NCBI GenBank assembly: GCA_963924565.1
Contig: OZ004611.1
Span: 2,604,001-2,668,000 of the forward strand
DNA: 64,000 bases
Origin: Ascidiella aspersa
Lineage: Eukaryota
Direction: 5' to 3'
The notes beneath the pieces are model-generated. The model was given only the letters and a program-made list of their open reading frames with translations. It did not search any database and had not been told where the DNA came from. The translations under genes were made by a program, and so were the position numbers. Shown here one piece after another: positions 66-63,936 of the stretch. Positions within the stretch are counted from its first letter, which is position 1. Each line of letters begins with the position of its first letter.

Positions 66-1855
66 GTTAACATGTTGGTACAGCAGCAGACCAGTTGTTG
101 GTTTCTGTTCCGTCGCATGTCAAGGCTAATGTTCCGACTAAAACATATCCGGCGTTGCAGGTGAAGGTATGAGGTACGTTGTAAGCTGTAACTACAGTTG
201 TTCCGACTCCGTTGGTTATTGAGGTTGCCGCACAGGTTATAGCTGAAAATACATAATATATGTCTCAATTGTTTTTATAATAATATATCTCCATTGTGCG
301 CGAGAATATCAATTTCTTATTACCCATCTGTTGCTAAGCACGTGGGACGAAAAAGTGAACGTATGCCGGATTAGAAATCAAAACAATATTTGAAATGCTT
401 AAAGTAATATTTACCTGTGCATGTCAAGGAGTTTTGATTCCAGGTGTCTGTCGTGGTACAAAGCGAAGATGAAGGGTCACAATCAGCCACCTTATACCCG
501 TCGTTGCAGATGATTGGCACTGTGCCGGTGTAGCCGCCAGAAGGCACAGTTGTCCGGTGAGGGTCGCCGGTGCAGCGGCGCATGTGGCGGCTGTTTCAAA
601 CATCAAAATAGAAGATAGATGAGAGTGTGTGTTGTGATGCACGAGTTTTCCTTGACGGCTGACACTGTTTACGAGTGTTGCCGACAGTAACAAGTAACAA
701 CACGGCTGCAATTGATTGGTGAAACAGTGGTCTGCTTTTCATAATTCGAAACCCGCTTTAACAAACACAACTTTTTTATCGGCTGGTTTTGATTAAAACA
801 AATGTTTAGTGCTACGAGTGGACTTCCCTTTTTGCAATGTGATTAAACAAAATTCGATAACATTGAAATTCATTTAGAAAACTTTGATTTGAATAGCTGT
901 GGGTTGTAGTTTGGGTTTAAATTCTAGGTTTTGCAAATGTGGCAATTCCCATTTTAATATGATGAAGAAGCTAGAAAATTAATTAAAATTCAAAATGTAA
1001 AAGTTTAAGCCTCGTATTTGAGGTGCGTGAAAAAAACTGTGAGGCAATTTGGACCAATCAACTGCCAACAAAAGCTTTAAAACTGATTTTTTGGGTCTTT
1101 GTTTCCATTCTATTAAGGTCGCTTAAACTGTTCTTTTGTTTCTACGCTTTTGTTTCTTCAGACCAACCTGAGTTTTTTGAAAAATTTGTATTTTGTTGTA
1201 ATTTACGCACCGTTCGTATTATTTAGGAATACAGCGAATTGATTTCAGGTGCTCTCACAAACGCTAATTTTTGTTTTTTTTACCACTGTTAGTCGCAGGT
1301 AAGGTGCCCAGTCGTTAAAATTTTTACTGTGCTATTTACGACCAAGAAGTACTTTGCGCGATTTAAATAAAAGGCTTAATAAGGAAAGTTGGGCTGCGGA
1401 ATCGAAGATAAACTCGGGACTAGATACTCGAGTGAGCCAAACGTTTACCAAACTATTTCAACGCAAATAGGTTATCACTGTGGCTCATGTTTTTCAATAT
1501 TTACCTGTGCACGTCACTGAGGCTGGGTCCAGAGTGGTTCCGGAGCACGACAATGAGGTAGCAGACGCATCAAACCCGGCTGTGCATGAGAAAGTTGTTG
1601 TCGAACCGTCTGCAAGCGGAGTAGCTACGCCATACGTTCCTTCGGTCACAGCCACAAGATCACATTGAGCTGCAAACAAATCGGCAAAATATCAAATTAA
1701 TACATGATATCAGAGCAGGGTTATGACTTCTGTAGCTTTACACAAACATAGATCACTTTCGGTTAAGTTCCAGACTGAAACTGTTTTGAATGAGCCTCAC
1801 CTTGAGCGCGGTTGGCCACTGCGAGCAGACAAAATGCGAACAACTGGAAGTTCAT
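66..1855 (-). pseudogene. Gene A: CCP/Sushi-family paralogue, disrupted or truncated (signal peptide, Q-type CCP, frameshifted A-type CCP, T-type CCP ending in a stop)
   Basis: Coding exons 1855-1801 (MNFQLFAFCLLAVANRAQ), 1669-1505 (165 nt, QCDLVAVT...VTCT), 590-415 (176 nt, 10 nt short of the 186-nt paralogues, so frameshifted) and 242-66 (ITCAATSI...VPTC, then TAA at 69-67). All have GT/AG boundaries. Any further exons would lie beyond the window edge. Confidence 0.8.
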
Positions 1856-2117
1856 TTTGATTGGAAAATGGCGTTAGCTCTGTAATTGTTAAAAATGAAG
1901 TTTAAATTCTAATAAGAATAACCAATAAAATTAATTGTAATAAATAAAATGCATTTCCAACGAGCTTACCTTTTCGAAATCAAACAGATGTTTCTGGCTG
2001 AAAGTTCTTCAAAACTGAAGTTACAGGACTGGAGAATCGACTTATAAGATCGGTGAACAAAAAAAAACCGTTCGATTTCAACAGAAACAACTTTACTTAA
2101 AGAGTAACACGGTGAAG

Positions 2118-2124
2118 TTATATA
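2118..2124 (-). promoter_or_regulatory. Putative TATA box of gene A (type-I promoter); non-coding exon 1 ends at 1970
   Basis: TATATAA on the minus strand at the same position as TATAAAA in genes B (15814-15820) and D (34685-34691). A conserved donor AAAG|GTAAGC lies at 1970, 15667 and 34537. Confidence 0.5.
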
Positions 2125-3310: not shown

Positions 3311-3721
3311 CAGTGATTCTCAACCGCGGCTCTCAACTGTACATTTTGCGGCTCTCTAACCGAGTGAAAAATTAGTTAGAAGTGGCAGAATTGCAACAAA
3401 ATAAGTAAGAGAAATCAAGAATTAATGAATTGTATCAGCAAGGATCCCGAGTACGAAGTACTAATGTTACCGGGTACTTCCATCCGGCTCTTTAAAATAA
3501 TTTTGTGGTTTATTACGTCACAATATATTTAGTCCTGATCGACAAGTTATGGCAAACAGTGTTAATTAGTTAGCCTAGGCTAGCGTAATGTATATTTGAT
3601 GTTTTCTTGTTGCTTTCTTAATATTTTTTAATTATATGCCTACTGTTGTTTTTTATGCGGCTCCTTGCAAACATTAGGTTTGAAATGCGGCTCTTGCTCT
3701 AAAAAAGGTTGAGAATCACTG
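3311..3721. mobile_element. hAT-type MITE (same element as 17011-17440)
   Basis: TIR CAGTGATTCTCAACC...GGTTGAGAATCACTG; non-coding. Confidence 0.85.
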
Positions 3722-5868: not shown

Positions 5869-6010
5869 NNNNNNNNNNNNNNNNNNNNNNNNNNNNNNNN
5901 NNNNNNNNNNNNNNNNNNNNNNNNNNNNNNNNNNNNNNNNNNNNNNNNNNNNNNNNNNNNNNNNNNNNNNNNNNNNNNNNNNNNNNNNNNNNNNNNNNNN
6001 NNNNNNNNNN
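5869..6010. other. Assembly gap
   Basis: Run of N. Confidence 1.
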
Positions 6011-9226: not shown

Positions 9227-12200
9227 CTAAAGAGCCTTGATGAAAGCGAACGCGGAGAGAAGCATCGCCATCAGTGCAGTGTGCAGGTGGAACAAGCTAG
9301 CGCTGTCACCTGGAAATAAGTTGATAGAAATTGGTTGGAAAATGTCACATCACACAAAGTTCTCAGCGAATGCAAATAACATGCCCTTCAAAAATATGGC
9401 TGGTAAGGCGCGATTTGTTAACATAAAAAAGCGTTACCAGAATAACCTCCACTTTTACCCACAATCTCCCCACTGTATTTATAAATTTACATCACAATTT
9501 CCCTGTTTGTGAGAGCCCTTGTGACGGTTGTTCAGCAACATACATAGGGGAAACTAAACGTTTTCTCGTTAAAATTATTAACCCTGATAAGGTCAGCTGG
9601 TATCTGCTGCCAAAAGGTCTGGTTGTACTTTTTCTATCTATTGATATGTTGCCTGGTGGAATTAATTCTATTTTAGCTAGAATTCTATATTTCAAGTTAC
9701 CTGTGGTGGAAACGGTTGTGGTTGCAGTGCAAGTGGGGGTGGTCGCATTATAGTTATTGGCCAGAGTTCCGTCGCATTTGAGGTCTCCAGTAGTGGACGA
9801 GAGTGTGTAGCCGCTGTTGCAAGTCACAGTGACCTCTCCGTTATAAGCGACAGTGCAGGTTGGAGCCACTGCGCCGTTGGTCACAGTCAATGCCGAGCAG
9901 GTAATTGCTGGATAAACAAAGAAACAAACAATACAAAAGTTAAAAAGGTAAACGTAAGTCTAAAATAATTCTAGTTTTCCTACAATTTTACCTAACAAAC
10001 CATTGGCAACGTAATACGATGTTTAAAGGGAAATCCATACATAACTTTTAGCGAAAATTAATTTGACACTAAATGGTTTACCAGTGCATGTCACTGCGGT
10101 CGGGTTCCAGGTGTTTGTGGCCGAGCAAATTGACGAGTTGGTAGATCCCGCCTTATACCCGCTGTTGCATGTGATTGCCACTGTGCCGGTGTAGCCAGTA
10201 GTGGGCATAGTTGGGAAAGTTCCTTGGGTGAGGGTCGGTGAAGCGTTACACGTGGCGGCTGTATTATATAGATGACTTTATAGAAAGGAAAAAACTTAAC
10301 TTAAGGAAACTATGTACAGACACGATTAACCTCTATAAATTTCGTTCATTTCGCCCTCAGTATGAAGTTGCAAAAGGAGGAAAATTTAAGCCAACAACCC
10401 CGAGGATGGAACATTTGTTTTCAACAAATGCTTGTTTCTGTTTAAGACAGTAGAGGTTCTTGCTTTGATTTCCATCCTTATAGTATAGTTACTGATATTA
10501 TTTCGTTTTTATACAAACTAATGAACTTGAACTTTTGACTAACCAGTCGTTACAGTAAACAGTCTCACAAAAATCTTACTCTAAAAATGCAGTATGGTCT
10601 TCATACAGTTTACTTTTTTAGCTTGGTTTATTCAATTTATCCAACAAATAAGTTTCTCTAATTATTTATTTCTGCATATTTTGCATATTTAAATTAGCGG
10701 AACCGTTCTAATCACTTTTGAACAGTTACTTTTCCCACCAACCGGTGCAAGTGAGTGAGGTCGGGTTCCAGGTGTTAGTTGTATCGCACGATGCAGAGGT
10801 TGCTGCCCCAGATGCAGAAATGTACCCGGCGTTGCAGGTGATTGACACAGAGCCACTGTAACCACCACTGGGCATAGTTGGGAAGGTTCCTTGGATGAGG
10901 GTGGGCGCAGCGTTGCATGTGGCGGCTGTAATATATGGATGAATTTGTAGAAACGAAACTTAAGGAAACTATATAAGAACAGACAAGATTTATCTTTATA
11001 AAGTTCGTTTCATTTAACCCTCAGTATTAAGTTGCAAAAGGGCGGAAAGTCACGCTAAATCTCCCTGAGGATTAAACATCACTTGTTCTCAACAAATGCT
11101 TATTTCGGTGCAAATTTAAGGCAGTAGAGCTTCTTGTTTTGATTTTTGTCCTTAAATTTTAGTTACTGATACTATGGCGATTTTATACAAACTGATGAAC
11201 AAGAACTTTTCACTAACCAGTCGTTACAGTAAACAGTATCTTTCTTACTTGCAAACATGCTGAATAGTCTTAAAACAGTTTGCTTTTTCAGCATAGTTTA
11301 TTCAATTTATCTAACAAATAAGTTACTCTAATCGTTTATTTATGTTTAATTTGTGTAGTTTAATTAGCGGAACCGTTCAAATCACTTTTCAACAGTTACT
11401 TTTCATACAAACCGGTGCATGTGAGTGAGGTCGGGGTCCAGGTGTTGGTTGCACTGCATGATGCAGAGGTTGCTGCCCCAGATGCAGAAGTGTACCCGGC
11501 GTTGCAGGTGATTGACACTGAGCCACTGTAACCACCACTGGGAATAGTTGGAAAAGCGCCTTGGGTGAGGGTCGGTGCAGCGTTGCATGCGGCTGTTTGA
11601 AACATTTGACATTTTTTGCAAATGAAAAAAACAACAACTCAATTTTGCTTGTTTTGCTTTACCTAATCCAGTAGTTTCCTTTTTATTATCATTGGATTTC
11701 GCTGGATTGTTGTACGAATCAGAGTATTAATGTTAAATTGTCGTATGTTTTAAGACAATCTAAGATTTCCTACCAACACAAGTAAGTGATGCTGGATTCC
11801 AGGTGTCTGTATCGGTACAAAGCGAAGATGAAGCTGCACCAGAAGCCAGAGTATACCCAGTGTCGCATATGATTGGCACTGTACCGGTGTAGCCGTCTTC
11901 AGGGACAGCTGGAAAAGTTCCATAGGTGAGGGTCGCCGGTTCAGCGGCGCAAGTGGCGACTGTTTGAAATAGAAAATAGATTGAACACACATATGCTAAT
12001 CAAAGTTACTTAATAATTTGCCAGAGTTTGTAAACTCCCCTTCTGCCAGCGGTGATCTTTCTACTGACTAAATATATTACACTTAACAAAAAACAAAAAC
12101 AATAATATTTAACGGTCAAGATCGTGTTACAAATGTACGAAACTTTTATAAAAATGAACGATGTACATAAATGCGCGTGTTTCCAAAATTAAAATTCTTT

Positions 12201-15200
12201 CAAAGTCGAACTTACACACGCATTCTGTGGACTCACTACCATTTTGCAAGTTACGTTTTTTAATATAAAGGAATATAGAATTTAATCCGATTAGAAAGTC
12301 TTAACGCTTGTTCCATCTAATAGAAAAAAAAATAACAGACCAAACCTCAGCATTTTTTCTACGGTTCTTAATATATGTTTTACCGCCTTAAAAGATAGTG
12401 GCCACGTGCAAAACGTAAAACTATACATTTGTAATTGACGGACTAATGCAAATCCAGCAAACTCTGCTTTGAGTTTCTCTTGCAGTTTAACGTAGGACGA
12501 ACTCGCATATAAACCTTGGGTCTGATTCAATGCAGTAAAAGTTTTACGGTTGCGCGTGTTTACGACTAAATTTACAAACGTTTACAAACTCACTTGGCGT
12601 AAATAAACTAATGCTAAAAAACGTCGAAGAACAGTTGGTATTCAAGTCAACAATTATGAACATTTTACCATCGCATGTCAGTGTTGCGACAAAGGTGGTG
12701 CCGCTTGAAGCACATACAGTCGATGCAGCTGACGCAGCGTAACCCGCGTCGCAAACGAGGTTGAGTGTAGCACCGTTATTAATATTTGTACCAGCGGCCG
12801 GTGAGGTAGTCCCGTTTGCGATGGTGGGAGAAATGCACTGAGCTGTAAATAGGTAAAGTCATTACTGAACGATTGTAAAGAATATAATTGTACCATACTG
12901 AAATACAGGGAATTAAAATGGTTGATGTACCTAATGTTTTAGCCTATTTCGATTAAATCATTTAAGTCCAAAAGCATGGTGCGTCCCATCGCATCATCGA
13001 AAATGTTAAACAATTTTTTGAAGGCATTTTTCGCTTTGCGTTAATCGATTGGATATGTTGTTTTATCTCCTCGATTGCTAGCAAGTTTTTATTTCATAGG
13101 CCCTCTAATTTTATTATCTATAAAAGTGTGCTCTATAAGATTACTCAAAAGATAAATAAATAAAAAAACTATAGGCCTTTCATATGGAAAATTATGAAAA
13201 CACACAGTATGTTAGTTAGAGCTGGATGGAAACGCACAATAAGACCCACAAAGCAACAAAATTTAAATCAGAATAATCTATACAACCTAAATAAAGCAGG
13301 GATTCCCAAACTGTGTGCCGCAGGACTTTCGTCCGCAAAATACAACACAATAAAAGGATAAAAGGGCAATGATGCTCCCCTACCCCGGGAGGTGTCTAAT
13401 TTGCACCACAAAAGCCCCGAAGGTCATGCCCCCCCCCCCAAAAAAAATGTATCAAAATTTTACTCTTAATAATTTGTTTTTTAGCATTTATTGGCAGTAC
13501 AGAACATTCGATCACAGATATACTAAACCTTTAATTGTCATTCACTGTTACGTCACAAACGATTTAGTTAATATAACGTTTGGTATACAATAATGTAGTT
13601 TTACTACTTTTAGACAGTTTTTGCTCTAGGACTGTGTTTTGAGTATTGCGTTAACACTCAGTCAGTTGCTGCTCAAAACGGTTTGCTAGCATTGTTACTT
13701 GTGTTCGTTACGGCATTTAAAACAATGACAAAAGCTAAATAAAAAAGTTAAAACTTTTTGCCCCCCCCAAAAAAAATGCTCGGCTAGCTACGCCACTGCG
13801 CGGCACACTACCGTGCCTCCAAATATTTTCATGTGTGCCGCGAAACTTTCATTTTGGAAATTAAGTTATTTGTGTTACCAATAGGCATACACCCAAGTAT
13901 TTTAGACTTAAATACGCACTATTCATTACAAATTAATATATTGGGATATTACAAATAGTTTGTCATATGTTAAGGGCGATTGTAAAATTACTCTACTGTT
14001 GTTCTTTTAACAGTGTGCCGCAAACTATTTAACAATTTAGAATTTTTTAGTGTGACGCGAGCTAAAAAAGTTTGGGAACCACTGTAATAAAGTAAAATGT
14101 GCAGTAATAACCAGGACAGAATAAGATCTAGAATCGTCTGAATGCGAACTAAATCTGTCGAAATAAGTCCTAATTTAACAAAATAAGACAGCAATGAACA
14201 ACAAACGTCCCAAAACTGTAGAGCAGGAAATAGGGCGGTTGCGGCACACCTTTTTGCCATCGGCCGTTTTGGTGTCGACGTTTGGGCGCTGTAATTTAAG
14301 AGGCGCCATTGGGGCGCCGCTGTTTTGGCACCAGATTGTTTGCCGCAATTTGTGAGTAGGCGCGGGTATAGAATTAGAATTTGACTTAGGGTTGAAATTA
14401 CAAAGGGGAGTTAAGGGTGAACTTAGGGGTGGGGTTTTTTGGGAAGTAAAAGGGCTGTAAAGGCCTTATTCTTTCCATTTAGGTCTCATTTCGACGAATT
14501 TAAGTTTAATTTCGATTTAAACGTTGTTACGACTATTAGGTATTAGTCCTATTTAGGTGTTCTATGCCGAAAGTCTAGTCCTTTTTGGTGTTTTACCTAA
14601 CTGTAATTTATGACGTAGTTGATGTTGTTCTGATTTAGGTCCAATTATGGCGGGAGTCCCGCTAAATATGTTGGCTATTTGTCTTGCTTCGTTAGCAAAG
14701 AGACTACATCATCCTTAGAGTTTATTTTGAAAGGGCTACAAATGCAGTCATATTGTCCAATGTCTAGTGTTTATTGATAGAAATCGCGACTTAAGTTTCT
14801 TTCCAGCAGTGTTTTTTTTTTTATTAAAAAATAAAAATCTAAATGAAACTTTCTTTGGCGAATTCTTATTTTTTAAGAAAAGCGTTAATTTTATCTGTGA
14901 ATGAAAAAACTTTTTTATTTTTATTCTGCATTTGACAACTTTAAACTATGAAGTGTTCGAATATATATTTAAATATTTCAATTTTGAATTCCAAAATTTA
15001 CCTTTAAAATGTTCCTAAGGTTACATCATACCGTATTAATAAGACCAACGGCAGGATTAAATCCAAAACATTTTTGGTATAAGACCTAAGTGGCTTAAAT
15101 GCCTTAAATAATATCCAGATCCGCAGGAAATGAATGTGGAACGATTACTGCCGCCGCCGTGACATCGTGTCGACGTGTAGGCTCCATGTTTTAAATGGCG

Positions 15201-15555
15201 GCGTTTGGGGACTCTTTTTTTATTTTTTTTTTATTTGTTTATTTTGTGTTGAAGCTAAGTGGGCTTTGTGATTAAAAGTCTTATTTTGGCTGTTTAGTTC
15301 TTATTCCGACATTTAGCTAGTAGTCCTGTTTTGAACTGAGTTTTATTCCAACCTGGACGTTATTCGTATTTTAATCTTATGGCTAGAATCCACTTTCAGT
15401 CGCTAATTTTAAAAATAATACAGAATTTGTTTAATATTTTTTATTTCCCTGCGGCGCACCTTTAAAATCGCTTCTGTAAAGTATTATTAACAAGACTCAC
15501 CTTGAACGCGGTACGCGAATGCGAGCAGACAAAATGCCAACAACTGGAAGTTCAT
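9227..15555 (-). CDS. Gene B: predicted GPI-anchored protein with 6 Sushi/CCP-like domains (about 414 aa), intact
   Basis: join(15555-15501 signal peptide; 12842-12669 P-type; 11959-11774 A-type; 11592-11413 S-type; 10925-10743 hybrid; 10258-10082 M-type; 9907-9701 J-type plus Thr stalk; 9309-9227 GPI signal and TAG). All introns are phase-1 GT-AG; 1245 nt open. Each exon has 4 Cys in a C..C-x-x-G[YF]..C..[W]..C pattern. Confidence 0.88.
13297..14084. mobile_element. hAT/Charlie-like MITE with a nested insertion (about 13325-13798), in an intron of gene B
   Basis: TIR CAGGGATTCCCAAAC...GTTTGGGAACCACTG; TSD AAATAAAG/TAATAAAG. An uninterrupted relative lies at 44704-45005. Confidence 0.75.
14110..15400. 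mobile_element. Non-coding foldback-like repeat, related to about 4716-5090 and 39227-40431
   Basis: Shares GGCGCC-rich blocks and AATAAG(T/G)CCTAAAT-like subrepeats with the other copies. Confidence 0.5.
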
Positions 15556-18867: not shown

Positions 18868-19028
18868 NNNNNNNNNNNNNNNNNNNNNNNNNNNNNNNNN
18901 NNNNNNNNNNNNNNNNNNNNNNNNNNNNNNNNNNNNNNNNNNNNNNNNNNNNNNNNNNNNNNNNNNNNNNNNNNNNNNNNNNNNNNNNNNNNNNNNNNNN
19001 NNNNNNNNNNNNNNNNNNNNNNNNNNNN
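18868..19028. other. Assembly gap
   Basis: Run of N. Confidence 1.
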
Positions 19029-50563: not shown

Positions 50564-53500
50564 ATGAACTTCCAGTTGTTCGCATTTTGTCTGCTCGCAG
50601 TGGCCTACCGCGCTGAAGGTAAGTGGTATTCAAAAAAATCTACTCTTATCACAATTGTTGCGGTCAATTAAAATATCACATACTTTGTTTAAATTTAGGT
50701 TGAAACTCAACCAAAAGCGACAAATGATGGTGTAAAGCAGGGGTTCTTAAATTGGGGTCCATTGACCCCTTGGGGATACGTGAATTAACTTTAGGGGGTC
50801 CATGAAGGCCATATGTAAATAATAGTGTATCTTAAAAAAACAATTAATTTTTAAAGAAAATAGTTTAATCAAAAATAAAAAAATTAGCATTGAATACATT
50901 TAGACTCCATTTTACTTAAATCTAGCATATTTCTTAAAGTCTATTTGTATTGTGATATAAATTTATGAAAAAATAAGCATATCTCTGAAATCTATTTGAT
51001 TGTGACGTCATTTTTGAAAATGTCTTGCCTTCCGTGGTCCAAGCGACGCCAAAAATATATTTTAGTTGTCCGCGGTAAAAAAGTTTAATAATCCCTTGTG
51101 TAAAGCGAAGTCGTAGTCCTGCTTTGATATAATATATCAAATTGACATTTTGCGGATTTGTCTGCAGCTCAATGTACTCTTGCGGCTGTGACCCAAGGAA
51201 CGTATGCCGAATCTTCTCCCCTGGCATCCGGTTCGTCAACAGCTTTCTCGTGCGCAGCTGGTTTTGTTGCATCTGCTACGTCGTTGTCGTGCTCTGGAAG
51301 CACCCTGGACCCAACCTCAGTGACTTGCACAGGTAAATATTGAAAAACATAAACGACAGTAATAAACTATTTCCATTGAGATATATTTGTGATGGAAAAC
51401 GTCTGGCCCACTCAACCATCATTCCCCGAACCTGTCTTCGACTCCGACACTGCTTTAAGGCTTTGATTTAAATCGTGCGAAATCCTCTCTTAGTCGCAAA
51501 TAGCACAGTGAACATTTTAATGACGGGCGCCTTACCTGCGCGACTAACAGTGGCAAAAAAACAAAAACTAGCGTGTGACTTGCGGGAGCACCTGAAATCA
51601 GTTCATTTTATTCTTAAATAACATGAATGGTTCCATTTTTTATTCTTAAAAACGATGTGAAATTACAAGTTAGTAAATTTTCGGGTTTATTATAATAGAA
51701 TGGATATTGATGCATTCATGAAAACTAGAATTTCAGCCAAATCTAAAAGCGCAGCTTATGTCTTTCTAATAAATTTCGATGTTATCGAATTTCGTTTAAT
51801 TACATCGCAAAAAAGGAAGTCCGTCCGTATAGCTGAAAATTTGTTTTAATTAAACCAGCCGATAAAAAATTGTGTTTATTAAAGGGGGCTTTGAATTATA
51901 AAAAGCAGGCCATTGTTTCACCAATTAGGATCAATTGCAGTCGTGCTAGTTTTTACTGTCGGCAACACTCGTAAACAGTGTTAGCCGTCAAGGAAAACTC
52001 GTGCATCACAACACACACTCTCATCTATCTTCTATTTTTTTTTTCTTTAAAACAGCCGCCACATGCTCCGCTGCTCCGGCGACAAGTTTTTAACTAAAGG
52101 TGCAGTACGATAGCAATGTTGCAATGTTTTTTATCCTTTGTTTGAAGAACATAGTTTAAGCTCACACATTCCGTAATACCAAAATGATGAAGAAATAAAT
52201 AATTTAAGCTCCTAAAAACTTCGAAAAGTGGGTCTTCTTGTTGAAAAGATTTCAGAACAACCAAAGGTCGTTCCATTACGGAGCAAACCAGTGTTCATCA
52301 TAATTGAACGATATCTCCCCGTTGCCTGGCTGCCACGTTGTTGGGTTTGCATCAAGTTAAAACAAAACCCTTCCGCTGCATTTGAAGGTATAAATCTTGC
52401 CTACAACGCAGTTGTTTCTGTCAAACACCATTTTGATGAATTCTTGTCTAATTTGCGCACTTTTTTGCCTGTACGTAGATCCACTAAGCTAATTTGCGCA
52501 GTTTTTTGGTCGTATGTAGGTCCAATAAAACAAATTTGGGCACTTTTCGTCCATAAGTAGGTCCAATAAAACTAATTTGGTCCCTTTATTTCTCCTACGT
52601 AGCTCCAAAAAAAACTAATGTGGGCACTTTTTTGTCCAGACGTAGCTAAAAAAATCTAATTGTGGAACTTTTTTCGAAACTTTGTTAAAGTAAAAATGGG
52701 GTACTTAAGGTATTTTTTTACGAATTGTTATAATCAAAATGTAGCAAAATGTTAAACATTACGTAGTGCTTAACATTCGGTAAATAAAATAACATATTAT
52801 GTGTTTTTCTGCATTTCGCGGTGTTTGGAGTACAGTTATCCTATTGTAGCACAGAAATGGCATCCCTAGACTGTTTGCCGCTAAATGTGTCTGGAATACA
52901 AACGACTGGTGTGGCATAAAGGATTAAAGCCTGTAGCCTGAATGGCCCTCGATTGTCGTTAGCCTGTCGTCCCCAATCGGTCTTGTGCTCGCTCGATCGG
53001 GTTTCAAATGTAACTGATTGGGCAGAGATTAGCGCGACAATCCCGGGCGCTTTTGCCTGATGCCGTGACCTCTCGGTAAAAGGTCAAGATTTTCTGAGCA
53101 CCGCATGCCATTTGTTGCTTTCGTTAGGGCGTTACCTTTTACACGGTCATATCTTTGTTGTTGTTTTTTAAGTGTGAGTAAATTACTTTACTATACCAAA
53201 GAAAACTGACATCAAACAACAAGTAAGCATTATACAAGCATAGCATCATAACTTCATTCTTTGGAAACCGTGCGAATGGATTTAGCTGTTTTGGCAAGCG
53301 CAATGTTTTGCAGAATCAGCTAAACCTGTGCCAAAATTTTAGGTGTTTTGAATGGTGCCTTGCTGCTGCAATGATACTGTTTGTATGTTGGCACATAGGA
53401 GTAATCCAGCGGAATCCACACCGCGTATATTCCAGGCTTATAATGAGGTGATTCTCCTTAAAATTGCAGTGGTATACGAATACCGCAAGGCACCTCTCTA

Positions 53501-56500
53501 GATTAATGCAGTTAAACAACAAATAAGGGTCGGGGATACTCAGTGACGTCACAAAGCTAAGTATAAACGTGCCACGTTTTTGGTTTGTAAAATATCGGCT
53601 ATCGCTATCGACATAAAAAGACACGGACATCCCTAGTTCTAAAGTTTAAACTGAAAACTTTTAGGCCAAATATTTCAGTTTTTATATGCGTTGGGCTAAA
53701 CTCAAGTGCAATCTTTTAGTTTGGAACACTATATACGGATCTGTTCATAAGTTTAATGGTGAAAATAACGGCCTAAATAGACGTTAAAAGCGACACGCTT
53801 TATTTTCAAACGTTTCGGCAAATGCTCATGCCATCATCAGTAATATGAAGGCCACATCAGTTACACCCGTTTATATACACTTTAGTCGCACAAAGGAATG
53901 ATTCCATTTTCCGTAAAAGCGTATACGCTGATACCTGAGCTGAAATGCGACGGTAAAATGTTTTCATAATTTTTGACTTAAATACCAACTGTTCTTCGCC
54001 GTTTTTTAACATTAGTTCATTTACGCTAAGTGAGTTTCCAAATGATTGTAAATTTAGTTGTACACACGCGAATCTTTACTGCATTGGATCAGACGCAAGG
54101 TTTATATGCGCGTTAGGACGACCCAAGGTCTATATGTGAGTTGGTCCTACGAGAGAAACGATAAGCAGAATTTGCTGGCCTTTGCAATAGTCCGTCAATT
54201 ACAAATGAATAGTTTTACTTTTTGCAGGTCGCGACTATCTTTTAAACGGTAAAAAACATCTTAAGAACCGTATAAAAAATGCTGAGGTTTGGTCTGTTAT
54301 TTTTTTTCCTATTATATGGAACAAGCGTTAAGACTTTCTATCGGATTAAATTCTATATTCATTTATATTAAAAAACGTAACTTGCAAAATGGTAGTGAGT
54401 ACATAGAATGCGTGTGTAAGTTCGACTTTAAAATAATTATAATTTTGGAAACACGCGCATTTATGTACATCGTTCATTTTCGTAAAAGTTTCGTACATTT
54501 GTAACACGAACTTCACCGTTTAACATTCTTGTTTTTTATTTTGTTCAGTGTAAATATATTTCGTTGGTAAAAAGATCACCGCTAGCATAAGTGAAGTTAC
54601 AAAAACAAACACTGGCAAACTACTTGGTAACTTTTATTAGCTTATGTGTATTCAATCTTTGTTAATGTTTCTTTCAGCCGCCCTATGCAACGCTGAACCG
54701 GCGACCCTCACCCAAGGAACTTTCCCAACTGTGCCCACTGCTGGCTATACCGGCACAGTGGCAATCACGTGCAACGATGGGTATACTGTGGCTTCTGGCG
54801 CCGCTTCATCTTCGCTTTGTACTACGACAAACACCTGGGATCCTGAAACACTGGCATGCGTTTGTATGACATTTTCATTTTCCTTACACACAACGATTTA
54901 ACATTAAATTCCCTAATTCGTGCAACAATGCAGTGAAATACTACCATAATGAAAAGGGTACTACTGGATTAGGTAAAAAGCAAAACAAGAAAAATAAAGT
55001 CTTGTTTACATTTGTGAAATATGTTTAATCTTTCAAACAGTCGCATGTAACGCTGCACCGACCCTCACCCAAGGAACCTTCCCAACTATGCCCACTGGTG
55101 GTTACAGTGGCTCAGTGTCAATCACCTGCAACGCCGGGTACATTACTTCAACTGACTCTGCATCATGCAGTGGAACCAACACCTGGAACCCGGACACATT
55201 GACATGCACTGGTTAGTAGGAAAAGTGATTGCTTAAAAGGGGTTTGAACGGTTCCGTTAATTCAAATATACAATTTATGCAGAACACTATAGAGTACTCT
55301 ATTTTTTCGATAAATTGAATTAATTATGCTGAAAAAGCAAACTGTTTTAGGAGTATGTAGCATGTTTGCGATTAAGAAAGATACTGTTTACTGTAACGAC
55401 TGGTTAGTGAAAAGTTCTTGTTTATCAGTTTGTATAAAATCGCCATAATATCAGTAAACTAAACTGTAAGGATAGAAATCAAAACAAGAACCTCCACTGT
55501 CATAAATTGCCTCGAAATAAGCATTTCTTGAAAACAAGGATGTTTATTCATCGGGGGTTTTAGCTTGAACTTTCCTCCTTTTGCAACTTAATACTGAACT
55601 TTGGATAAATCTTTGCCTAAGTTTCTTTAAGTTTCATTTCCACAAATTCATCCTTATATTACAGCCGCCCTATGCAACGCTGCACCGACCCTCACCCAAG
55701 GAACTTTCCCAACTATGCCCACTGCTGGCTACACCGGCACAGTGGCAATCACATGCAACAGCGGGTATAAGGCAGGATCTACCAACTCTTCACTTTGCTC
55801 GGGCACAGACACCTGGGACCCGACCTCAGTGACATGCGCTGGTAAACCATTTAGCTTTAATTTTGACAAGGAATTACTTGGCGTTGCTAAATCTAATATA
55901 GACGAATAACAATTTTAGTTTTTTTAATCGCTTTTGGAACTATGATCTATTCATTTTTAAATTAATGATTATAAAATCGGATTACGCTTCCAATTGATTG
56001 TTGGTGGAAATAAAACAAAATTTAAAATATTATTGTATAAAATTATTATTATTTACACTCATAGTTATGATTAAACATGTATCATTGATACAAAAGTGCC
56101 TGCGTTAACTAAATTGCAGATAATTTTTTTCCCTTTTATCTATTTTTATATTTTTTCATTGTTTAACCAGCAATTACCTGCTCGGCATTGACTGTGACCA
56201 ACGGCGCGGTGGCTCCAACCGGCACTGTCGCTTATAACGGAGTGGTCACCGTCTCCTGCAACAGCGGCTACACACTGTCGTCCACTACTGGAGACCTTAA
56301 ATGCGACGGAACTCTGTCCAACAACTACAACGCGACCACCCCAACTTGCACTGCAACCACCACAGTTTCCACCACAGGTAACTTCAAATATAGAATTCCA
56401 ACCAGGCAACATATCAATAGATAGAAAAAGTACAACCAGACCTTTCGGCAGCAGATGCCAGCTGACCTTATCAGGGTTAATAATTAAAACGAGAGAACGC

Positions 56501-56841
56501 TTAGTTTCCCCTATGTATGTTGCTGAACAACCGTCACAAGGGCTCTCATGAACAGGGAAACTGTGATGTAAATTTATAAATACAGTGGGGAGATTGTGGG
56601 TATAAGTTGAGGTTATTCTGGTAACGCTTTTTTCTGTTAACAAATCACGTCTTACCCGCCATATTCTAAGCAAATTTTATGGGGCATGTTCTTTGTGTTC
56701 ACTGAGAACTTTGTGTGATGTGATATTGCTAACCTATTTCTATCGACTTATTTCGCAGCTGGTAGCGCTAGCTTGTTCCACCTGCACACTGCACTGATGG
56801 CGATGCTTCTCTCCGCGTTCGCTTTCATCAAGGCTCTTTAG
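50564..56841 (+). CDS. Gene E: predicted GPI-anchored protein with 5 Sushi/CCP-like domains (about 347 aa)
   Basis: join(50564-50618 signal; 51168-51332 Q-type; 54678-54863 A-type; 55041-55211 S-type; 55665-55841 M-type; 56171-56377 J-type plus stalk; 56759-56841 GPI and TAG). 1044 nt open, all introns phase-1 GT-AG. Assumes the exon stub at 52056-52083 is skipped. Confidence 0.87.
50738..51097. mobile_element. hAT-type MITE in a gene E intron
   Basis: CAGGGGTTCTTAAA terminus; 8-bp TSD GTGTAAAG (50730-50737 and 51098-51105). Confidence 0.75.
52445..52675. repeat. Degenerate tandem repeat, unit about 40 bp
   Basis: Recurrent TAATTTG(C/G)GCACTTTTT...CGTAG(G)TCCAATAAAAC, about 6 units. Confidence 0.6.
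52900..54645. repeat. Intronic block duplicated at about 61885-63625 (partial third copy at about 59830-60418)
   Basis: Colinear high similarity between gene E and gene F introns. Confidence 0.85.
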
Positions 56842-58368: not shown

Positions 58369-61300
58369 ATGAACTTCCAGTTGTTGGCATTTTGTCTGCT
58401 CGCAGTCGCCTACCGCGCTGAAGGTAAGACTTCAATCAATTTTCGTTCGTTTTAATTGTGAAACAGTAACAAAAGCAAAACCGTCTTCGAAATCATTCGG
58501 CCTTATCAGGATTGTTCTTAGTAATTTACGTTCAGCCTAACTGTATCGTTACTTGCTATATCTAGACTTAACCATAGAAAACAAATAGTTTTTCTATCTG
58601 ACGATGGAAAATCAAACAAGTGTTTGATCGCACCTTTCATACATGGCATAACAAATAATATTTGCAAACTTTCTGTTAATGGCTTTACTTATCCACAGCT
58701 CAGTGCACTTCTCCCACCATCACCAACGGGACTCCGAACCCGGACGCTGGTCAGACTGTTAATAACGGTGCTACACTCTCAGTGACTTGCGCCTCGGGGT
58801 TTAAGGCGTCCCCTTCATCAACCACATGTGCTGCAACCGGCGACACCTTCACCGACACACTGACATGCGAGAGTAAATCAAAGTTTTTACATAGTTTTCG
58901 ATCTAAATACCAAAGTTTCTTTGACGTTTTTTAACATTAGTTGATTTACGCCGATTAAGTTTGTAAATGATTGTAAATTTAGTCGTACACACGCGATACC
59001 TAAAAACGTTTACTGCATTGGATTAGGCCAAAGGTTTTTATGCTAGTTCGTCCTACGTTAAACTGCAAGAGAAACTAAACGTAGTGTTTGCTGGCAGTGG
59101 CATTAGTCCGTCAATTACAAATGTTTTACTTTTTGCGGTCTGCGACTATCTTTCAAAATGGTAAAAAATATATAAAGAACCGTACAAAAACTGCTGCGGT
59201 TAAGTCTGTTATTTTTCGTTATTAGATAGAAGAAGCATTAAGATTTTCTAATCGGACTAATATCCACTTTTCTTTATGCTAAGAAAAGCCATCACTGTAA
59301 ATTGAAATCCAAGCCTAGGGGTGGAAATTGTCGAGCTTTGGGGTGGTCCACTCGAACATGGAAAATCCCACCATGCCACCATGGGAATAAGCAACCCTAA
59401 GCATTGAATTCCTGGCATGGAATTTTCTATCATACATGCTTTCCATATTTAGCGATGGGTTTGTCTAACCTTCTTTTTTGATAGTAATACGCGTGGAATT
59501 TTCCATCCTACAAACTTTTCTACCTTCGTTAATCGGTTTCAGCCATCATCCTTGTTTGGTATTACCTCGCATATAATACCTAAAAAAGCAGCTTCAGAAG
59601 GGCTAGATCTCAGTTGCTAACACACATATGTGTGCATGTTTCATTGAACACATAATACCGCTGTGATATTTATTGAAAGAAAAAAAGTACGAAAAACTAA
59701 CAGCAATTTCAGGTGACAAATAGGTAGTTATTAGAGGTCAAAAAGTAAAAGATAAATGTAACATACGTTATAGAAATAAATCAAGACATGCATATAAATA
59801 CTTCCGAAAATTATGTATTTTACACCGCCATATCTTTGTTTGTTTTTTTAAATGTTAAGTAAATTACTTTACTCAGCCAAAGAAAACTGACATCAAACAA
59901 CAAGTAAGCATTATACAAGCATAGCATCATACCTTTGGTCTTTGGAAAACGTGCGAATGGATTTAGCTGTTTTGGCAAGCGCAATGTTTGCAGAATCAGC
60001 TAAACCTGTGCCAAAAGTATAGGTGTTTTAAATGGTGCCTTGCTGCTGCAATGATACTGTTTGTACGTTGGCACATAGGAGTAATCCAGCGGAATCCACA
60101 CCGCGTATATTCCAGGCTTATAATGAGGTGATTTTCTTTAAAAGTGCAGTGGTATACGAATACCGCAAGGCACCTCTCTAGATTAAGCCAGTTAAACAAC
60201 AAATAAGGGTCGGGGATACTTACTGACGTCACAAGGCTAACTATAAACGTGACCTCCATCGCCACGTTTTTTGTTTGTCAAATATCGGCTATCGCTACCG
60301 GCATAAAAAGTCAAGTAACGGACATCCCTAGTTCTAATGTTTAAACTGGAATTTTTTTTAGGCCAAATATTTCAGTTTTTATATGCGTTGGGCAAAACTC
60401 AAGTGCAATCTTTTAGTTTAATTAATATTTTCGTCGCACAATGGATATTACATGCATTTTCAGCTATAACCTGCGCGGCCACCTCAATAACCAACGGAGT
60501 CGGAACAACTGCAGTTACAGCTCACGGCGATTCATTTACATTTTCTTGCAGCACCGGATATATCCTATCTGGAACAGCGGCCTTGACATGCGACGGAACT
60601 GAAACCAACAACTGGTCGGCTGCTCTGCCCACATGCGCGGGTAAGTTGTTTTAATACAGTTAGAGAAAAATAATAGTAGGCAGTCGATCGTTTTTAGCAG
60701 ACAAGTTCGACTAACGATAACGACCAGTTGTTTGTTTTAAACATCATGGTATGACGATTTGAATTTGAAGTGATAAGTATAGCGATTATTTTTTGACTTG
60801 TCAAAAAAAGTCAAAATTTTGTCAAAATTTACATGTTAAGTTAAGATTTGTCAAAATTATTCCACGTTAAAAACGATTAAAAATGCACATAAATCGTTTA
60901 AAAATTAAAAAAAACTATACTAGGCTTTAGATAATTGCCGTTCAGTTAGAATTTTATCCAAAAATTTAGTTTTGAGTTTTATTCAAAGATATTTTAACTG
61001 TAGTAGATCTTCATTAGAGCAATACGGTGTACGCGCGCTTGCAGAATTAACCAACCTGGCCTAGTTTATCTCATTAAGCTCAGATCGAACTTCGTTTTTG
61101 CATTATATAGTTATTTTGATGTATTTGGACAAATGCATTAAACAGTAGGCCTATTGTTGTATTTTTCGCTTGTGATTTGCAATTATCCCATTTCCTATTT
61201 CGATAACTAGGTTTTTGTTAATTTTCTGCAATTATTTTTACGTTGTATTTTAGCTGTTTACACAACATTTTTTTATAAATAACCAGCGTCTTATTTCTTT

Positions 61301-63936
61301 GGAATTTTTATAGTAGTTTGTCTTTTTGAAAAAACAAAAATATCAAATAACCCATTTTTAAAGTTTCGCCTAAAGGCGAAACAATAACTGATTTTTGTTC
61401 GACCGGTGGTCAGTAAAACAATAAAAACGCATAATTGACGAAGCCAAGAAATAATGCAGTACTATAAACAACAATGCTTTGTTGAAATCATTATACTAGG
61501 TCAAAATTTTATAAAAAAAATATATTTCTAGGTCAAAATTTGTCAAAATTTCAACTTTTTAGGTCAAAATTTTTAATTTTTAGGTCAAAAAATAATCGCG
61601 CTAGTGATAAGTAATTTTCAAGATGGCTAGGTGTTCGTGTATAGATTTTGATTACTTTTCTTTTAACTAAATCACACACCCATCATGTATTGGTTGCATC
61701 GCATAACGTTAGTGTTTATAGTTTCGCGCATACTTCAGATTAAAGACCTAAGAAATCAGAATGCAAATGTGCATTCTTTAGCGTTAGCTTTGGCTTACTT
61801 TTAAGATTTAAAATATCGTGTCGGAATACGTTCAGTTTTTCATCCCACGTCCTCAGCAACAGATGAGTAGTAAAAAATTGATTCAAACGACTGGTGTGGC
61901 ATAAAAGATTATAGCCTGTAGCCTGAATGGCCCTCGATTGTCGTTGGCCTGTTGACCGCAATCGGTCTTGTGCTCGCTCGATCGGGTTTCAAATGTAACT
62001 GATTGGACGGAGATTAGCGCGACAATCCCGGGTGTTTTTGCCTGATGCCGTGACCTCTAGGTTAAAGGTCAAGATTTGCTGAGCACGGCATGCCATTTTT
62101 TGCTTTCGGGTGGCCGTTACATTTTACACGGTCATATCTTTGTTTGTTTTTTTCAAATGTTAATTAAATTACTTTACTCAGCCAAAGAAAACTGACAAAA
62201 AACAACAAATAAGTATTATACAAGCATAGCATCATAACTTTGGTCTTTGGAAAACGTGCGAATGGATTTAGCTGTTTTGGCAAGCGCAATGTTTGCAGAA
62301 TCAGCTAAACCTGTGCCAAATTTTTAGGTGTTTTTAATGGTGCCTTGCTGCTGCAATGAAACTGTTTGTACGTTGGCACATAGGAGTAATCCAGCGGAAT
62401 CCACACCGCGTATATTCCAGGCTTATAATGAGGTGATTCTCCTTAAAAGTGCAGTGGTATACGAATACCGCAAGGCACCTCTCTAGATTAAGCCAGTTAA
62501 ACAACAAATAAGGGTCGGGGATACTTACTGACGTCACAAAGCTAAGTATAAACGTGCCACTTTTTTTGTTTGTAAAATATCGGCTATCGCTACCGGCATA
62601 AAAAGTCAAGTAACGGACATCCCTGGTTCTAAAAATCAAACTGGAATTTTTTTTTAGGCCAAATATTTCAGTTTTTATATGCGTTGGGCTAAACTCAAGT
62701 GCAATCTTTTAGTTTGGAACACTATATACGGATCTGTTCATAAGTTTAATGGTGAAAATAACGGCCTAAATAGACATAAAAGCGACATGCTTTATTGTTC
62801 AAACGTTTCGGCAAATGCTCATGCCATCATCAGTGACATAAAAGACACATCAGTTACACCCGTTTATATACACTTCAGTCGCACAAAGGAATGATTCCAT
62901 TTTCCTTAAAAGCGTATACGCAGATACCGGAGCTGACATGCGACGGTCAAATATTTTCATAATTTTTACTTGAATACCAACTGTTCTTCGCCGTTTTTCA
63001 ACATTAGTTTATTTACGCCAAGTGAGATTGCAAACGATTGTAAATTTAGTCGTACACACGCGATACCCAAAACTTTTAATACATTTGAACAGACCCAAGG
63101 TTTATATGCGCGTTCGACGTTCGTCCTACGAGAGAAACGATAAGCAGAGTTTGCTGGCATTTGCATTAGTCCGTCAATTACAAATTTATATAGTTTTACT
63201 TTTTGCAGGTCGCGACAATCTTTCAAAATGGTAAATAATATATTAAGAACCGTAGAAAAATGCTGAGGTTTAGTCTGTTATTTTGCTTTATTAGATGGAA
63301 CAAGCGTAAAGACTTTCTAATCGGATTAAATTCTATATTCCTTTATATTAAAAAACGTAACTTGCAAAATGGTAGTGAGTCCACCGAATGCGTGTGTAAG
63401 TTCGACTTTAAAAGAATTATAATTTTGGAAACACGCGCATTTATGTACATCGTCCATTTTCATAAAAGTTTCGGACATTTATAATAAGATCTAAGGCGTT
63501 AAGTATTATTTTTTTTGTTTTGCATAGTGTAATATATTTAGTTGGTAAAAAGATCACCGCTAGCATAAAGGGAAGTTAAAAAACAAACACTGGCAAACTG
63601 TTCAGTAACTTTGATTAACTTATGTGTGTAGACAATAACGTGTTACTTGTTACTGTCGGCAACACTCGTAAACGGTGTCAGCCGTCAAGGAAATCTGCAT
63701 GCATCACAACACACGCTCTCATCTATCTTCTATTTTTATATTTCAAACAGCCGCCACTTGCTCCGCTGCACCGACGACCCTCACCCAAGGAACTTTCCCA
63801 ACTATGCCTTCTGGCGGCTACACCGGCACAGTGTCAATCACATGCAACAGCGGGTACGAGGTGGCTACTGGTGGCGTTTCAGCCTCGCTTTGCACCACGA
63901 CAAACACCTGGGATCCTGAAACACTGACGTGCACAG
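58369..63936 (+). CDS. Gene F: CCP/Sushi-family paralogue, 5' part (continues beyond the window)
   Basis: join(58369-58423 signal; 58699-58872 P-type; 60464-60640 T-type; 63751-63936 A-type; ...). All exons open, phase-1 GT-AG. Confidence 0.85.

Follow-up and report, generated by a model that had tools for sequence, protein, structure and literature searches.

The 64,000-nucleotide stretch of Ascidiella aspersa DNA analyzed here (the window) probably represents the centre of a tunicate-specific tandem gene family, which encodes small CCP (Sushi) surface glycoproteins with a GPI-type end and undergoes birth-and-death evolution. As a family the cluster is real, lineage-specific, unnamed and of a familiar kind. 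Twelve leader exons and 13 anchor exons of this subfamily were found, all within C5:2,551,277-2,737,130 (window plus 140 kb of flanks); both exons occur only at C5:2.551-2.737 Mb. The 186-kb cluster contains ~14 genes in two diverging arms. Within the window itself lie five 55-nt leader exons, four 83-nt C-terminal anchor exons and 24 single-exon CCP modules. The cluster is of interest as a cleanly delimited family whose DNA shows directly how modular evolution works, with seven old module types, fixed end exons, positional order, dated block exchange, hybrid exons and decay.

Eight genes (B, E, F, G1, G2, G3, G12 and G14) are intact, each with 7-14 exons and canonical splice sites and without a stop or frameshift. 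Three others (A, D and G5) carry a frameshift or stop codon, two (C and G4) are fragments, and one (G13) has diverged; defective or partial copies account for five of the 14. The modules follow a fixed order, in which the leader is followed by Q or P, then by zero to nine modules of types A, S, T or N, then by K, by M with a short Thr linker, and finally by the anchor. The predicted proteins carry 5-12 CCP modules and comprise ~350-765 residues. The combinatorial repertoire envisaged in the original prediction is thus not a free one: the strings place Q or P first and K-M last.

The ends of the genes are far more conserved than the middles, and the strings differ between genes, much as had been predicted. 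The leader exon, 55 nt with a phase 1 end, encodes an 18-residue leader; among the 11 close copies of the cluster, its mean pairwise identity is 93%, compared with 41-52% in the 150-nt flanks. The anchor exon (83 nt, i.e. 2 nt, 26 codons and a stop) is 96% identical among 13 copies, compared with 61% for the upstream intron and 80% for the 3' UTR. The pN/pS ratio is 0.10 for the anchor exon and 0.29 for the leader exon, relative to a module dN/dS of 0.46-0.99. Such islands of identity in diverged introns require ongoing selection or conversion. The predicted C-terminus consists of Gly-Ser-Ala-Ser, a 6-residue spacer and a 16-residue hydrophobic end (mean Kyte-Doolittle hydropathy 2.09) without a cytoplasmic tail, and is preceded by a Thr-rich linker of 9-17 residues at the end of the M exon. 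By rule-of-thumb inspection of this one exon, the 26-residue C-terminal signal is most likely exchanged for a GPI anchor. That the exon instead encodes a membrane-spanning anchor with a 3-residue tail seems quite unlikely: while most of the 22 terminal residues are hydrophobic, with a Lys three residues before the end, two His interrupt the segment, the small-residue run upstream is typical of a GPI attachment site, and the protein ends at the segment without a real cytoplasmic part. The features of a typical GPI signal are general knowledge. Of the predicted CD55/DAF layout (CCP plus S/T stalk plus GPI), the CCP string, the Thr linker and a hydrophobic C-terminal signal are borne out, but the "stalk" is only 9-17 residues long.

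Intact CCP exons are all multiples of 3 nt (165-216 nt), with AG/GT sites and phase 1-1. With a Pfam PF00084 cut-off of 20.7 bits for Sushi membership, A, K, T, N and most M and P exons scored 21-33.5 bits, the S exon of E and the M and P exons of B scored 18-20 bits, and the Q exons and the M exon of fragment C gave no PF00084 match. The proposed per-exon Sushi check thus succeeded, at or near the cut-off, for A, S, K, T, M, P and N; Q has no Pfam match, though it has the CCP fold. Four Cys and one Gly are invariant across the alignments of every module type, while a Trp between the third and fourth Cys is kept in A, S, K, T and N, is Tyr in M, and is absent from Q and P. An AlphaFold model of the Q module of gene E, the least typical type, had a pLDDT of 95.7, and its best PDB matches were all CCP modules (CR2, CD46, Crry, factor H and CD55; query TM 0.7-0.79, rmsd ~2 A), with a Foldseek probability of 1.00, although the small size of the domain kept the E-values at a modest 0.02-0.5. 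According to this model, the Q module folds as a CCP. In the module tree, a branch supported at 97-100% has all exons labelled T on one side, and the same holds for M, K, Q and N; the 12 core A exons are united in one clade (support 100/99), and labels change eight times, compared with 47.5 times when shuffled.

The composition of the modules is extreme. They are unusually rich in Thr (23.8%), Ala, Ser and Gly, Lys and Arg together make up 0.9% of residues, types S, T, Q and N contain neither basic residue, and 43 N-x-S/T sites occur in 74 modules. Such a Thr-rich, uncharged composition is unusual for a CCP domain. Judged from this composition, the mature proteins are probably heavily glycosylated, uncharged rods of varying length.

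Each of the 24 CCP exons was located where the previously predicted strings imply, the intact ones in phase 1-1, and the near-constant leader (five copies) and C-terminal exon (four copies) can now be assigned coordinates. Genes A to D lie on the minus strand. Gene A comprises a leader exon (1801..1855; 55 nt, phase 1 end), a Q-type exon (1505..1669; 165 nt, phase 1-1), an A-type exon (415..590) with a frameshift caused by a 10-nt internal deletion, and a T-type exon (66..242), in which an in-frame TAA at 67-69 directly precedes the conserved GT donor. The stop predicted for the T exon of this gene is therefore present, and the exon ends at 66, but the gene continues beyond it, and the remaining K, M and anchor exons are found 222-2225 nt to the left of the window. 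Gene B is complete, with a leader exon (15501..15555), a P-type exon (12669..12842), an A-type exon (11774..11959), an S-type exon (11413..11592), a hybrid exon (10743..10925), a K-type exon (10082..10258; formerly labelled M), an M-type exon with a 9-residue Thr-rich linker (9701..9907) and a GPI-signal-like anchor exon (9227..9309; 83 nt including the stop). The hybrid nature previously ascribed to one exon of B was borne out: its upstream intron and acceptor are K-type, and its body and downstream intron are S-type. The leader of B and 3.3 kb upstream are a 95-99% copy of the 5' block of gene A, with homology stopping 8 nt into intron 1. Two intergenic N runs start at the same homologous base of this duplicated block, one at 5869..6010 (4.0 kb upstream of the A start codon and 3.2 kb past the B stop) and the other at 18868..19028 (3.3 kb upstream of the B start codon and 0.7 kb past the C stop). 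Both were left unfilled, and no exon, reading frame or claim spans either of them; the 95-99% duplicate, which ends at both runs, may be partly an artefact of assembly or of haplotypes.

Fragment C retains an anchor exon (19752..19834), an M-type exon with linker (20018..20230) and a truncated K-type exon without a donor (20433..20581), upstream of which no leader exon was found. Gene D contains a leader exon (34368..34422), a Q-type exon frameshifted by a 2-nt deletion (34074..34236), an A-type relic consisting of an acceptor and ~20 nt (33003..33022), two T-type exons (32735..32911 and 32049..32225), a truncated K-type exon formerly labelled "(m)" (31621..31718), an M-type exon with linker (31348..31563) and an anchor exon (30490..30572). 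Truncated exons had been suspected in both C and D. Genes E and F lie on the plus strand. Gene E consists of a leader exon (50564..50618), the Q-type exon whose module was folded (51168..51332), an A-type relic (52056..52088; acceptor and ~33 nt), and A-type (54678..54863), S-type (55041..55211), K-type (55665..55841) and M-type (with linker; 56171..56377) exons, followed by an anchor exon (56759..56841) with a 3' UTR extending to ~57250 by read depth. The relics in D and E correspond to the two modules that had been marked "(a)". Gene F begins with leader (58369..58423), P-type (58699..58872), T-type (60464..60640) and A-type (63751..63936) exons, and extends past the right edge of the window, where N-type, M-type and anchor exons follow.

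Exchange of blocks between paralogues is evident from the sequences. Gene F is a three-part mosaic: its first 2 kb match G12 at 93%, the 12 kb that follow match G14 at 93-97%, and the last 1.6 kb match G12 once more, at 92%. The 5' block of B bears no relation to the corresponding blocks of the remaining P-first genes, and 5'-block data reject a clade of P-first genes in the AU test (p-AU 1.8e-49). One exon of B is the K/S hybrid described above; two S exons within G2 are identical, as are the A exons of F and G14. The exon shuffling originally predicted is thus upheld by the F mosaic, the AU rejection and the hybrid exon, which together do not fit congruent exon trees produced by simple duplication plus loss, the outcome named beforehand as contradicting it. 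Agreement of the 5' tree with the anchor-block tree was not rejected in the same test (p = 0.32), and shuffling is not demonstrable for every block. Rapid diversification was not seen at the sequence level, with no module type having a dN/dS above 1 (range 0.46-0.99); values of 0.5-1.0 could reflect relaxed constraint instead of function.

Birth-and-death evolution of this kind would be driven by unequal crossing-over and segmental copying between paralogues, through which exon blocks may be added, deleted, hybridized and re-paired. Since each module is one phase 1-1 exon, blocks can be reshuffled without breaking the reading frame. Both end exons would be held constant by selection, as would the succession of modules, which opens with Q or P and closes with K and then M. 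The resulting protein would consist of a cleavable 18-residue leader, a rod of 5-12 CCP modules, a Thr-rich linker of 9-17 residues and the 26-residue C-terminal signal, and such rods may contribute to a coat or a recognition layer at the cell surface.

The family is transcribed and spliced, as the original prediction required. Stranded RNA reads are confined to exons and the 3' UTR and come from the sense strand, and exon-exon joints occur at predicted boundaries; for example, joints leave the T exon type of gene F at its predicted end. Reads cover the A and K exons of E, and those on its M exon carry the letters of a paralogue. Most reads are 90-95% identical to E and F, with paralogue letters on M and T exons, and none of the spliced transcripts among the stranded reads is assignable to E or F. 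In the RNA sample, the S exon of E and the leader and P exons of F had zero reads, and leader-to-module and M-to-anchor joints were absent among the joints reported. These read identities, including the non-E letters on the M exon of E, favour the suggestion that most copies in the window are non-functional duplicates in decay and that the RNA derives from paralogues elsewhere in a very large CCP family. At least 150 further CCP exon matches do occur elsewhere in the genome, the lesions of A, D and G5 and the fragments C and G4 point the same way, and dN/dS reaches 0.73-0.99 in K and P modules. Nonetheless, decay as the general explanation appears very unlikely, given the eight genes whose 7-14 exons remain open and canonically spliced, and given the low pN/pS of the anchor and leader exons, both of them sharp islands of identity in diverged introns.

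As to relatives, a search of a 1.84-billion-protein library yielded neither a close relative nor a named family, consistent with the original failure to recognize one; the best 10 of 150 matches were multi-CCP proteins of invertebrate deuterostomes and molluscs, mostly of amphioxus, at 35-57% identity per module. No orthology with CD55 or other RCA genes of vertebrates was detectable among these matches. The amphioxus proteins (annotated CSMD3-like, SVEP1-like or P-selectin-like) share Thr/Ser-rich CCP modules with the Ascidiella family but come from a different subphylum, are 550-4600 residues long with 9-53 modules, and lack its leader and anchor sequences. CD55/DAF and the vertebrate RCA cluster resemble the family in having CCP modules mostly encoded by one phase 1-1 exon each, a Ser/Thr-rich membrane-proximal segment, a GPI-type C-terminal signal, and a tandem cluster grown by exon and gene duplication. 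However, CD55 has four modules and a ~70-residue Ser/Thr-rich stalk, whereas the Ascidiella family has 5-12 modules and a 9-17-residue linker; its modules nearly lack basic residues, its leader and anchor are nearly identical across paralogues, its module order is fixed, and orthology is undetectable. An analogy in organization is the CEACAM/PSG cluster of mammals, a tandem cluster with a conserved leader exon and a variable count of single-exon phase 1-1 modules, in which anchors are of the GPI or another type and exons are rapidly gained, lost and exchanged; its modules are Ig instead of CCP, and its lineage is unrelated.

The likeness to CD55 raises the possibility that the proteins are complement regulators that shield the animal's own cells, bind C3b-like fragments and dissociate convertases, with the expansion tracking tunicate complement. 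We regard this as fairly unlikely. The layout of CCP string, Ser/Thr linker and GPI-type signal is that of such regulators, and the best structural matches of the folded Q module are complement regulators and receptors, but complement proteins dominate the solved CCP structures, so that every CCP will match them in the PDB. Known complement regulators use charged, often basic, patches, so that modules with 24% Thr and 0.9% Lys plus Arg argue against a classical regulator, as does the absence of orthology; with so few Lys and Arg, decay-accelerating activity on C3/C5 convertases appears less likely. Tunicates do possess C3, Bf and MASPs, together with reported putative regulators that contain CCP modules (PMC5465252).

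Also to be weighed is a polymorphic self/non-self system (allorecognition, gamete self-sterility or marking of individuality), in which haplotypes would differ in gene number and strings; we hold this to be very improbable. Variable architectures, recombining mosaic genes, and copies born and lost speak for it, and variable Sushi receptors have tunicate precedents in vCRL1 (PMC9265791) and fester/FcoR (PMC12582321). In Botryllus, members of the fester family (FF) combine Ig, one Sushi and three transmembrane segments, while FcoR is Ig-Sushi-Ig-Ig with one transmembrane segment and an ITIM/hemITAM tail, and both diversify by intergenic recombination (PMC12582321). Like the Ascidiella genes, they form clustered tunicate multigene families with a Sushi domain, a conserved membrane-proximal part, a variable ectodomain and intergenic recombination (PMC12582321). 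The Ascidiella genes, with many CCP modules, consist of leader, CCP exons and anchor; no Ig or transmembrane exon occurs between leader and stop, and fester/FcoR identity was rejected on this ground. Ciona vCRL1 has a CCP-module ectodomain and is reported to be highly variable between individuals and to have splice variants (PMC9265791, PMC5465252); the Ascidiella family differs in being a 14-gene cluster with a GPI-type end. Against the self/non-self reading, dN/dS is below 1 for every module type, the family, unlike fester, FcoR and vCRL1, has no Ig domain, transmembrane segment or signalling tail, and Ciona vCRL1 itself was found not to govern self-sterility (PMC9265791).

A more specific form, which we consider improbable, is a previously unseen CCP-based individuality or recognition system of tunicates. 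Haplotypes would differ in gene number and strings, and recombination of exon blocks, aided by skipping of phase 1-1 exons in frame, would equip every individual with a particular set of glycan-rich surface rods on GPI anchors, which allorecognition, self-discrimination of gametes or complement self-marking would then read. Among invertebrates, tunicates are most closely related to vertebrates, and their recognition systems (fuhc/fester, vCRL1 and Themis) each use lineage-specific gene families. If the genes are polymorphic or control complement, they would open a new way into self-marking in a chordate that lacks an MHC; if not, the cluster still illustrates neatly how CCP surface proteins evolve by birth and death. 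Two side observations mark the host as a tunicate: AGR codons of mitochondrial COX1 are read as Gly at conserved Gly positions, as in the ascidian code, and a GH6 match is also present.

Within the window, 24 CCP-like exons were found by combining a six-frame scan with a module-derived HMM and splice-site phasing; those up to 34.2 kb are on the minus strand, those from 51.2 kb onwards on the plus strand. Intact CCP exons all measure 165-216 nt, divisible by three, and are in phase 1-1, and each is preceded by a pyrimidine-rich tract and AG and followed by GT. The five copies of a 55-nt leader exon, the four copies of an 83-nt terminal (anchor) exon and the phase 1-1 modules that the original prediction had described are all confirmed. 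Eight module types, Q, P, A, S, T, N, K and M, are distinguished here, M being a CCP module followed by a Thr-rich linker; what the original prediction labelled M and J are here K and M, respectively. Sushi domains had been expected throughout, and Pfam Sushi (PF00084) indeed matches A, S, K, T, M, P and N at 18-33.5 bits; among the modules scored it gives no match to Q, which is placed by its predicted fold. A Q-module structure predicted from an 18-sequence alignment had a pLDDT of 95.7, and its best PDB matches were all CCP modules, from CR2, CD46, Crry, factor H and CD55 (query TM 0.7-0.79). Opposite the M exons, at 9681-9965(+), 19950-20279(+), 31199-31651(+) and 56149-56676(-), run long antisense frames free of stops; they span 95-176 residues and have a high content of Gly, Ser, Val, Ala and Cys. 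Naive ORF lists include them; they were rejected as genes, being a by-product of Thr/Ala-rich sense codons.

With 140 kb of flanking sequence fetched, 78 module exons were annotated. Genome-wide, all copies of the leader and anchor exons, the constant ends that had marked the cluster from the start, fall inside C5:2,551,277-2,737,130 (C5 is contig OZ004611.1); the leader exon totals 12 copies there, counting a diverged one, and the anchor exon 13. Genes of the left arm are on the minus strand and those of the right arm on the plus strand, and genes D and E stand head to head across a 16-kb spacer with retroelement debris. An open frame of 262 residues in this spacer, 37956-38741(-), has a reverse transcriptase domain (PF00078, E = 2.1e-33) and is part of that debris.

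The six genes of the window, of which A (left) and F (right) extend past its edges, read Q-A*-T(stop)-K-M (A), P-A-S-h-K-M (B), K*-M (C), Q*-(a)-T-T-K*-M (D), Q-(a)-A-S-K-M (E) and P-T-A-N-M (F), an asterisk denoting a broken or truncated exon, (a) an A-exon relic and h a hybrid exon. The flanking genes read Q-A-T-A-T-T-A-T-A-T-K-M (G1), Q-T-S-S-A-S-K-M (G2), Q-A-T-K-M (G3), M only (G4), Q*-A-T-K-M (G5), P-T-S-T-S-K-M (G12), P'-A-A-M' without an anchor exon (G13) and Q-T-A-N-S-K-M (G14). Wherever leader and anchor exons exist, they flank the module string. Thus, the strings are variable yet ordered: the first module is Q or P, the last two are K-M, and variation is confined to the middle; K is missing before M only in F. 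In a tree of the exons, for each of T, M, K, Q and N a single branch (97-100% support) sets off all exons of that label, and the core A exons are a clade (100/99); 8 label changes are needed as against 47.5 with shuffled labels. Because the exons group by module label and not at random, the module types predate the genes.

G13 (C5:2,709,802-2,712,788, locus L011 of the right flank) is a diverged member. Its leader exon has 9 changes, its modules are one P-like and two A-like, and its M-like exon continues into a different, non-Thr tail, with no anchor exon after it. At least 150 further module-like exons (385 candidates) occur elsewhere in the genome without this leader or anchor, at C5:2.74-3.2 Mb, C2:4.10-4.13 Mb, C1:10.32-10.36 Mb and C8:9.23 Mb and on C6 and C9. 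Among them are near-identical tandem module arrays on C5, one of five units with a period of ~2.09 kb (2,840,283-2,849,503) and a second with a period of ~6 kb (3,009,596-3,093,453).

Judged exon by exon, with junction codons only, the reading frame is fully open in eight genes (G1, G2, G3, B, E, F, G12 and G14). In gene A, the A exon has a 10-nt deletion and the T exon carries TAA immediately before the donor. The T exon was correctly seen to end in a stop; the K, M and anchor exons of A lie immediately left of the window, beyond that stop, which is therefore a lesion and not the end of the gene. Q exons have lost 2 nt in D and 5 nt in G5, and C and G4 are 3' fragments. The truncated exons and A-exon relics noticed originally were found as stated.

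Exchange is recorded in gene F, which is a mosaic of its paralogues. Its first 2 kb (leader and P) are 93% identical to G12, the next 12 kb (T, A and N) are 93-97% identical to G14, and the last 1.6 kb (M and anchor) return to G12 at 92%; the 5' end of G14, in turn, matches E. In gene B, the leader exon together with the 3.3 kb before it was copied from, or shares its origin with, the matching stretch of A (95-99% identity), with homology ending 8 nt into intron 1, and the leader-block tree groups B with A, D, G2 and G3, all of them Q-first (100/100). Constraining the three P-first genes to one clade makes the fit to the leader-block data 222 log-likelihood units worse (p-AU 1.8e-49). A Q remnant was sought in the long first intron of B and was absent there. 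Exon h of the same gene has an upstream intron and acceptor of K type, followed by a body and downstream intron of S type, which bears out its earlier description as a hybrid. Identical exons also recur, two S exons within G2 and an A exon common to F and G14.

Exon shuffling, as the original prediction had it, therefore holds insofar as blocks have moved between paralogues (the mosaic of F, the rejected P-first clade, exon h), and needs amending insofar as the strings keep a positional order. The observations support recombination among paralogues within the family and under that order, brought about by unequal crossing-over, by segmental copying and possibly by conversion, as opposed to a shuffling of exons from unrelated genes. 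A conflict between the 5' and anchor-block trees was considered as further evidence of shuffling and dropped, since anchor-block data do not reject the 5' clade (AU p = 0.32) and 5' data reject the 3' clade only marginally (p = 0.055), so that the conflict of both trees is not significant. Joints in Logan contigs from two runs (X1 and X2) were likewise set aside as signs of structural variation, as they may link paralogues. An intronic unit of ~1.8 kb, with copies 88-94% identical, occurs at 52769-54575, 59817-60419 and 61881-63627 and in the right-flank loci L007-L013. The unit precedes modules of unrelated type (T and A); E has one copy, F three and G14 four. It may be a substrate of unequal crossing-over.

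The two end exons are more alike between copies than their flanks. Mean pairwise identity of the leader exon is 93% vs 41-52% in its flanks, and that of the anchor exon is 96%, compared with 61% for the intron before it and 80% for the 3' UTR. The pN/pS ratio is 0.10 for the anchor and 0.29 for the leader exon. For the modules, dN/dS is 0.46 for M and for T, 0.49 for S, 0.60 for A, 0.71 for Q, 0.73 for K and, from 3 copies only, 0.99 for P. A rapidly diversifying repertoire had been proposed; with module ratios of 0.46-0.99 and none above 1, what is seen is relaxed or mixed constraint, not demonstrated positive selection.

The leader peptide has a short polar start, 12 hydrophobic residues and a cleavage region of small residues. 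The terminal exon encodes Gly-Ser-Ala-Ser, a 6-residue spacer with two His, and 16 hydrophobic residues to the stop (mean hydropathy 2.09). Small residues, a spacer and a hydrophobic end are the usual shape of a GPI signal, and from this shape the proteins are probably GPI-anchored. The linker of M comprises 9-17 residues, with hardly any other than Thr, Ser, Ala and Val. Of the 4471 module residues counted, Thr accounts for 23.8%, Ala 12.7%, Ser 9.8%, Gly 8.9% and Lys+Arg together 0.9%; such Thr and Lys+Arg values, taken over all module exons of the cluster, are extreme for a CCP domain. Basic residues are wholly missing from the S, T, Q and N types, and 43 N-glycosylation sequons occur in 74 modules. 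This uncharged, Thr-rich composition points to heavily glycosylated rods. Classical complement regulators have charged binding faces, and judged by this general comparison the modules appear to fit poorly with that class.

RNA was read from one run of the same species label, at ~6% of the run, over 54650-60649. The library is stranded and, on the usual convention, the reads lie on the sense strand. They cover the A, K, M and anchor exons and the 3' UTR of E and the T exon of F, with none in the introns between the covered exons, and none on the S exon of E or the leader and P exons of F. Joints run from T end to T start, from T to A/K-type and from K-type to A-type, all at predicted boundaries. 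Among the reads, 183 of 255 are only 90-95% identical to E and F, and all those over the M exon of E and the T exon of F carry letters foreign to E and F. Transcription and splicing as modelled are thus established for the family, with no read assigned to E or F, because the reads are mostly 90-95% identical, carry other letters and skip some exons. Two stretches, 59450-59650 and 56450-56650, are genome-wide repeats, intronic or intergenic, with a DNA depth of ~930 and ~120 vs ~5 nearby. Reads switch strand there, as in an inverted-repeat element, and RNA lies on both strands.

A search of the module profile against 1.84 billion representative proteins matched 3352 CCP proteins, among which very long ones with many CCP modules prevailed. 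Ten top matches were looked up; mostly from amphioxus, with one clam and one acorn worm, they are 550-4600 residues long and 35-57% identical per module, and none of the ten has the leader or anchor of this family. The M exon alone as a query gave no match, with only proteins of 37-119 residues within view. The family differs from CD55 on three counts, sharing neither its 4 modules nor its long stalk nor its vertebrate orthology. In Botryllus, fester combines Ig, one Sushi and three transmembrane segments, and FcoR has Ig-Sushi-Ig-Ig, one transmembrane segment and tyrosine motifs (PMC12582321); Ciona vCRL1 is a single polymorphic CCP receptor gene (PMC9265791, PMC5465252). The Ig/transmembrane layout differs from leader-CCP-anchor genes and rules out membership in fester or FcoR, and a single gene as against a cluster argues by description against identity with vCRL1. 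What likeness there is to CD55, fester, FcoR and vCRL1 lies in being a clustered, recombining surface-protein set, and in design the family may come closest to the CEACAM/PSG genes of mammals. Literature searches brought up no tunicate GPI/Sushi family like this cluster, and HrSMLP1 (PMC6916515), considered as a relative, is unrelated. The cluster is a new, lineage-specific family of a familiar gene-family type. The structural part of the original prediction is supported, with corrections; the immune or recognition role that it suggested gains nothing from these tests.

The assembly holding the window spans 308.6 Mb in 75 contigs. In mitochondrial COX1, four Gly positions that are universally conserved are written AGG/AGA, and TGA is read as sense (Trp); the mitochondrial code is of the ascidian type (AGR = Gly, TGA = Trp), and the host is therefore a tunicate. 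A glycoside hydrolase 6 match in the genome stands slightly above the Pfam cut-off. The mitochondrial contig (C75, locus L015) exceeds 26 kb, and the best protein-collection matches to a 219-residue piece of COX1 reach at most 77% identity.

The window has a G+C content of 37% and two N runs (5869-6010 and 18868-19028), both intergenic and crossed by no exon or reading frame. A 4-kb block is present in two copies upstream of genes A and B (1793-5867 and 15493-18867, 95-99% identical), and in both copies the N run begins at the corresponding base, just behind an identical 8-nt word. Such a shared start would result if a repeated element had been masked deliberately, or if the assembler broke twice at the same repeat, and a hidden extra copy is possible. 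Directly after the first run lies a G-rich 71-bp satellite (6025-7325; 18.4 copies, 96% matches). Two direct repeats of 364 bp, 100% identical and 1.3 kb apart (23952-24315 and 25605-25968), look like the LTRs of a small non-autonomous retroelement, and a tRNA-Ala-like gene is located at 23741-23817(-).
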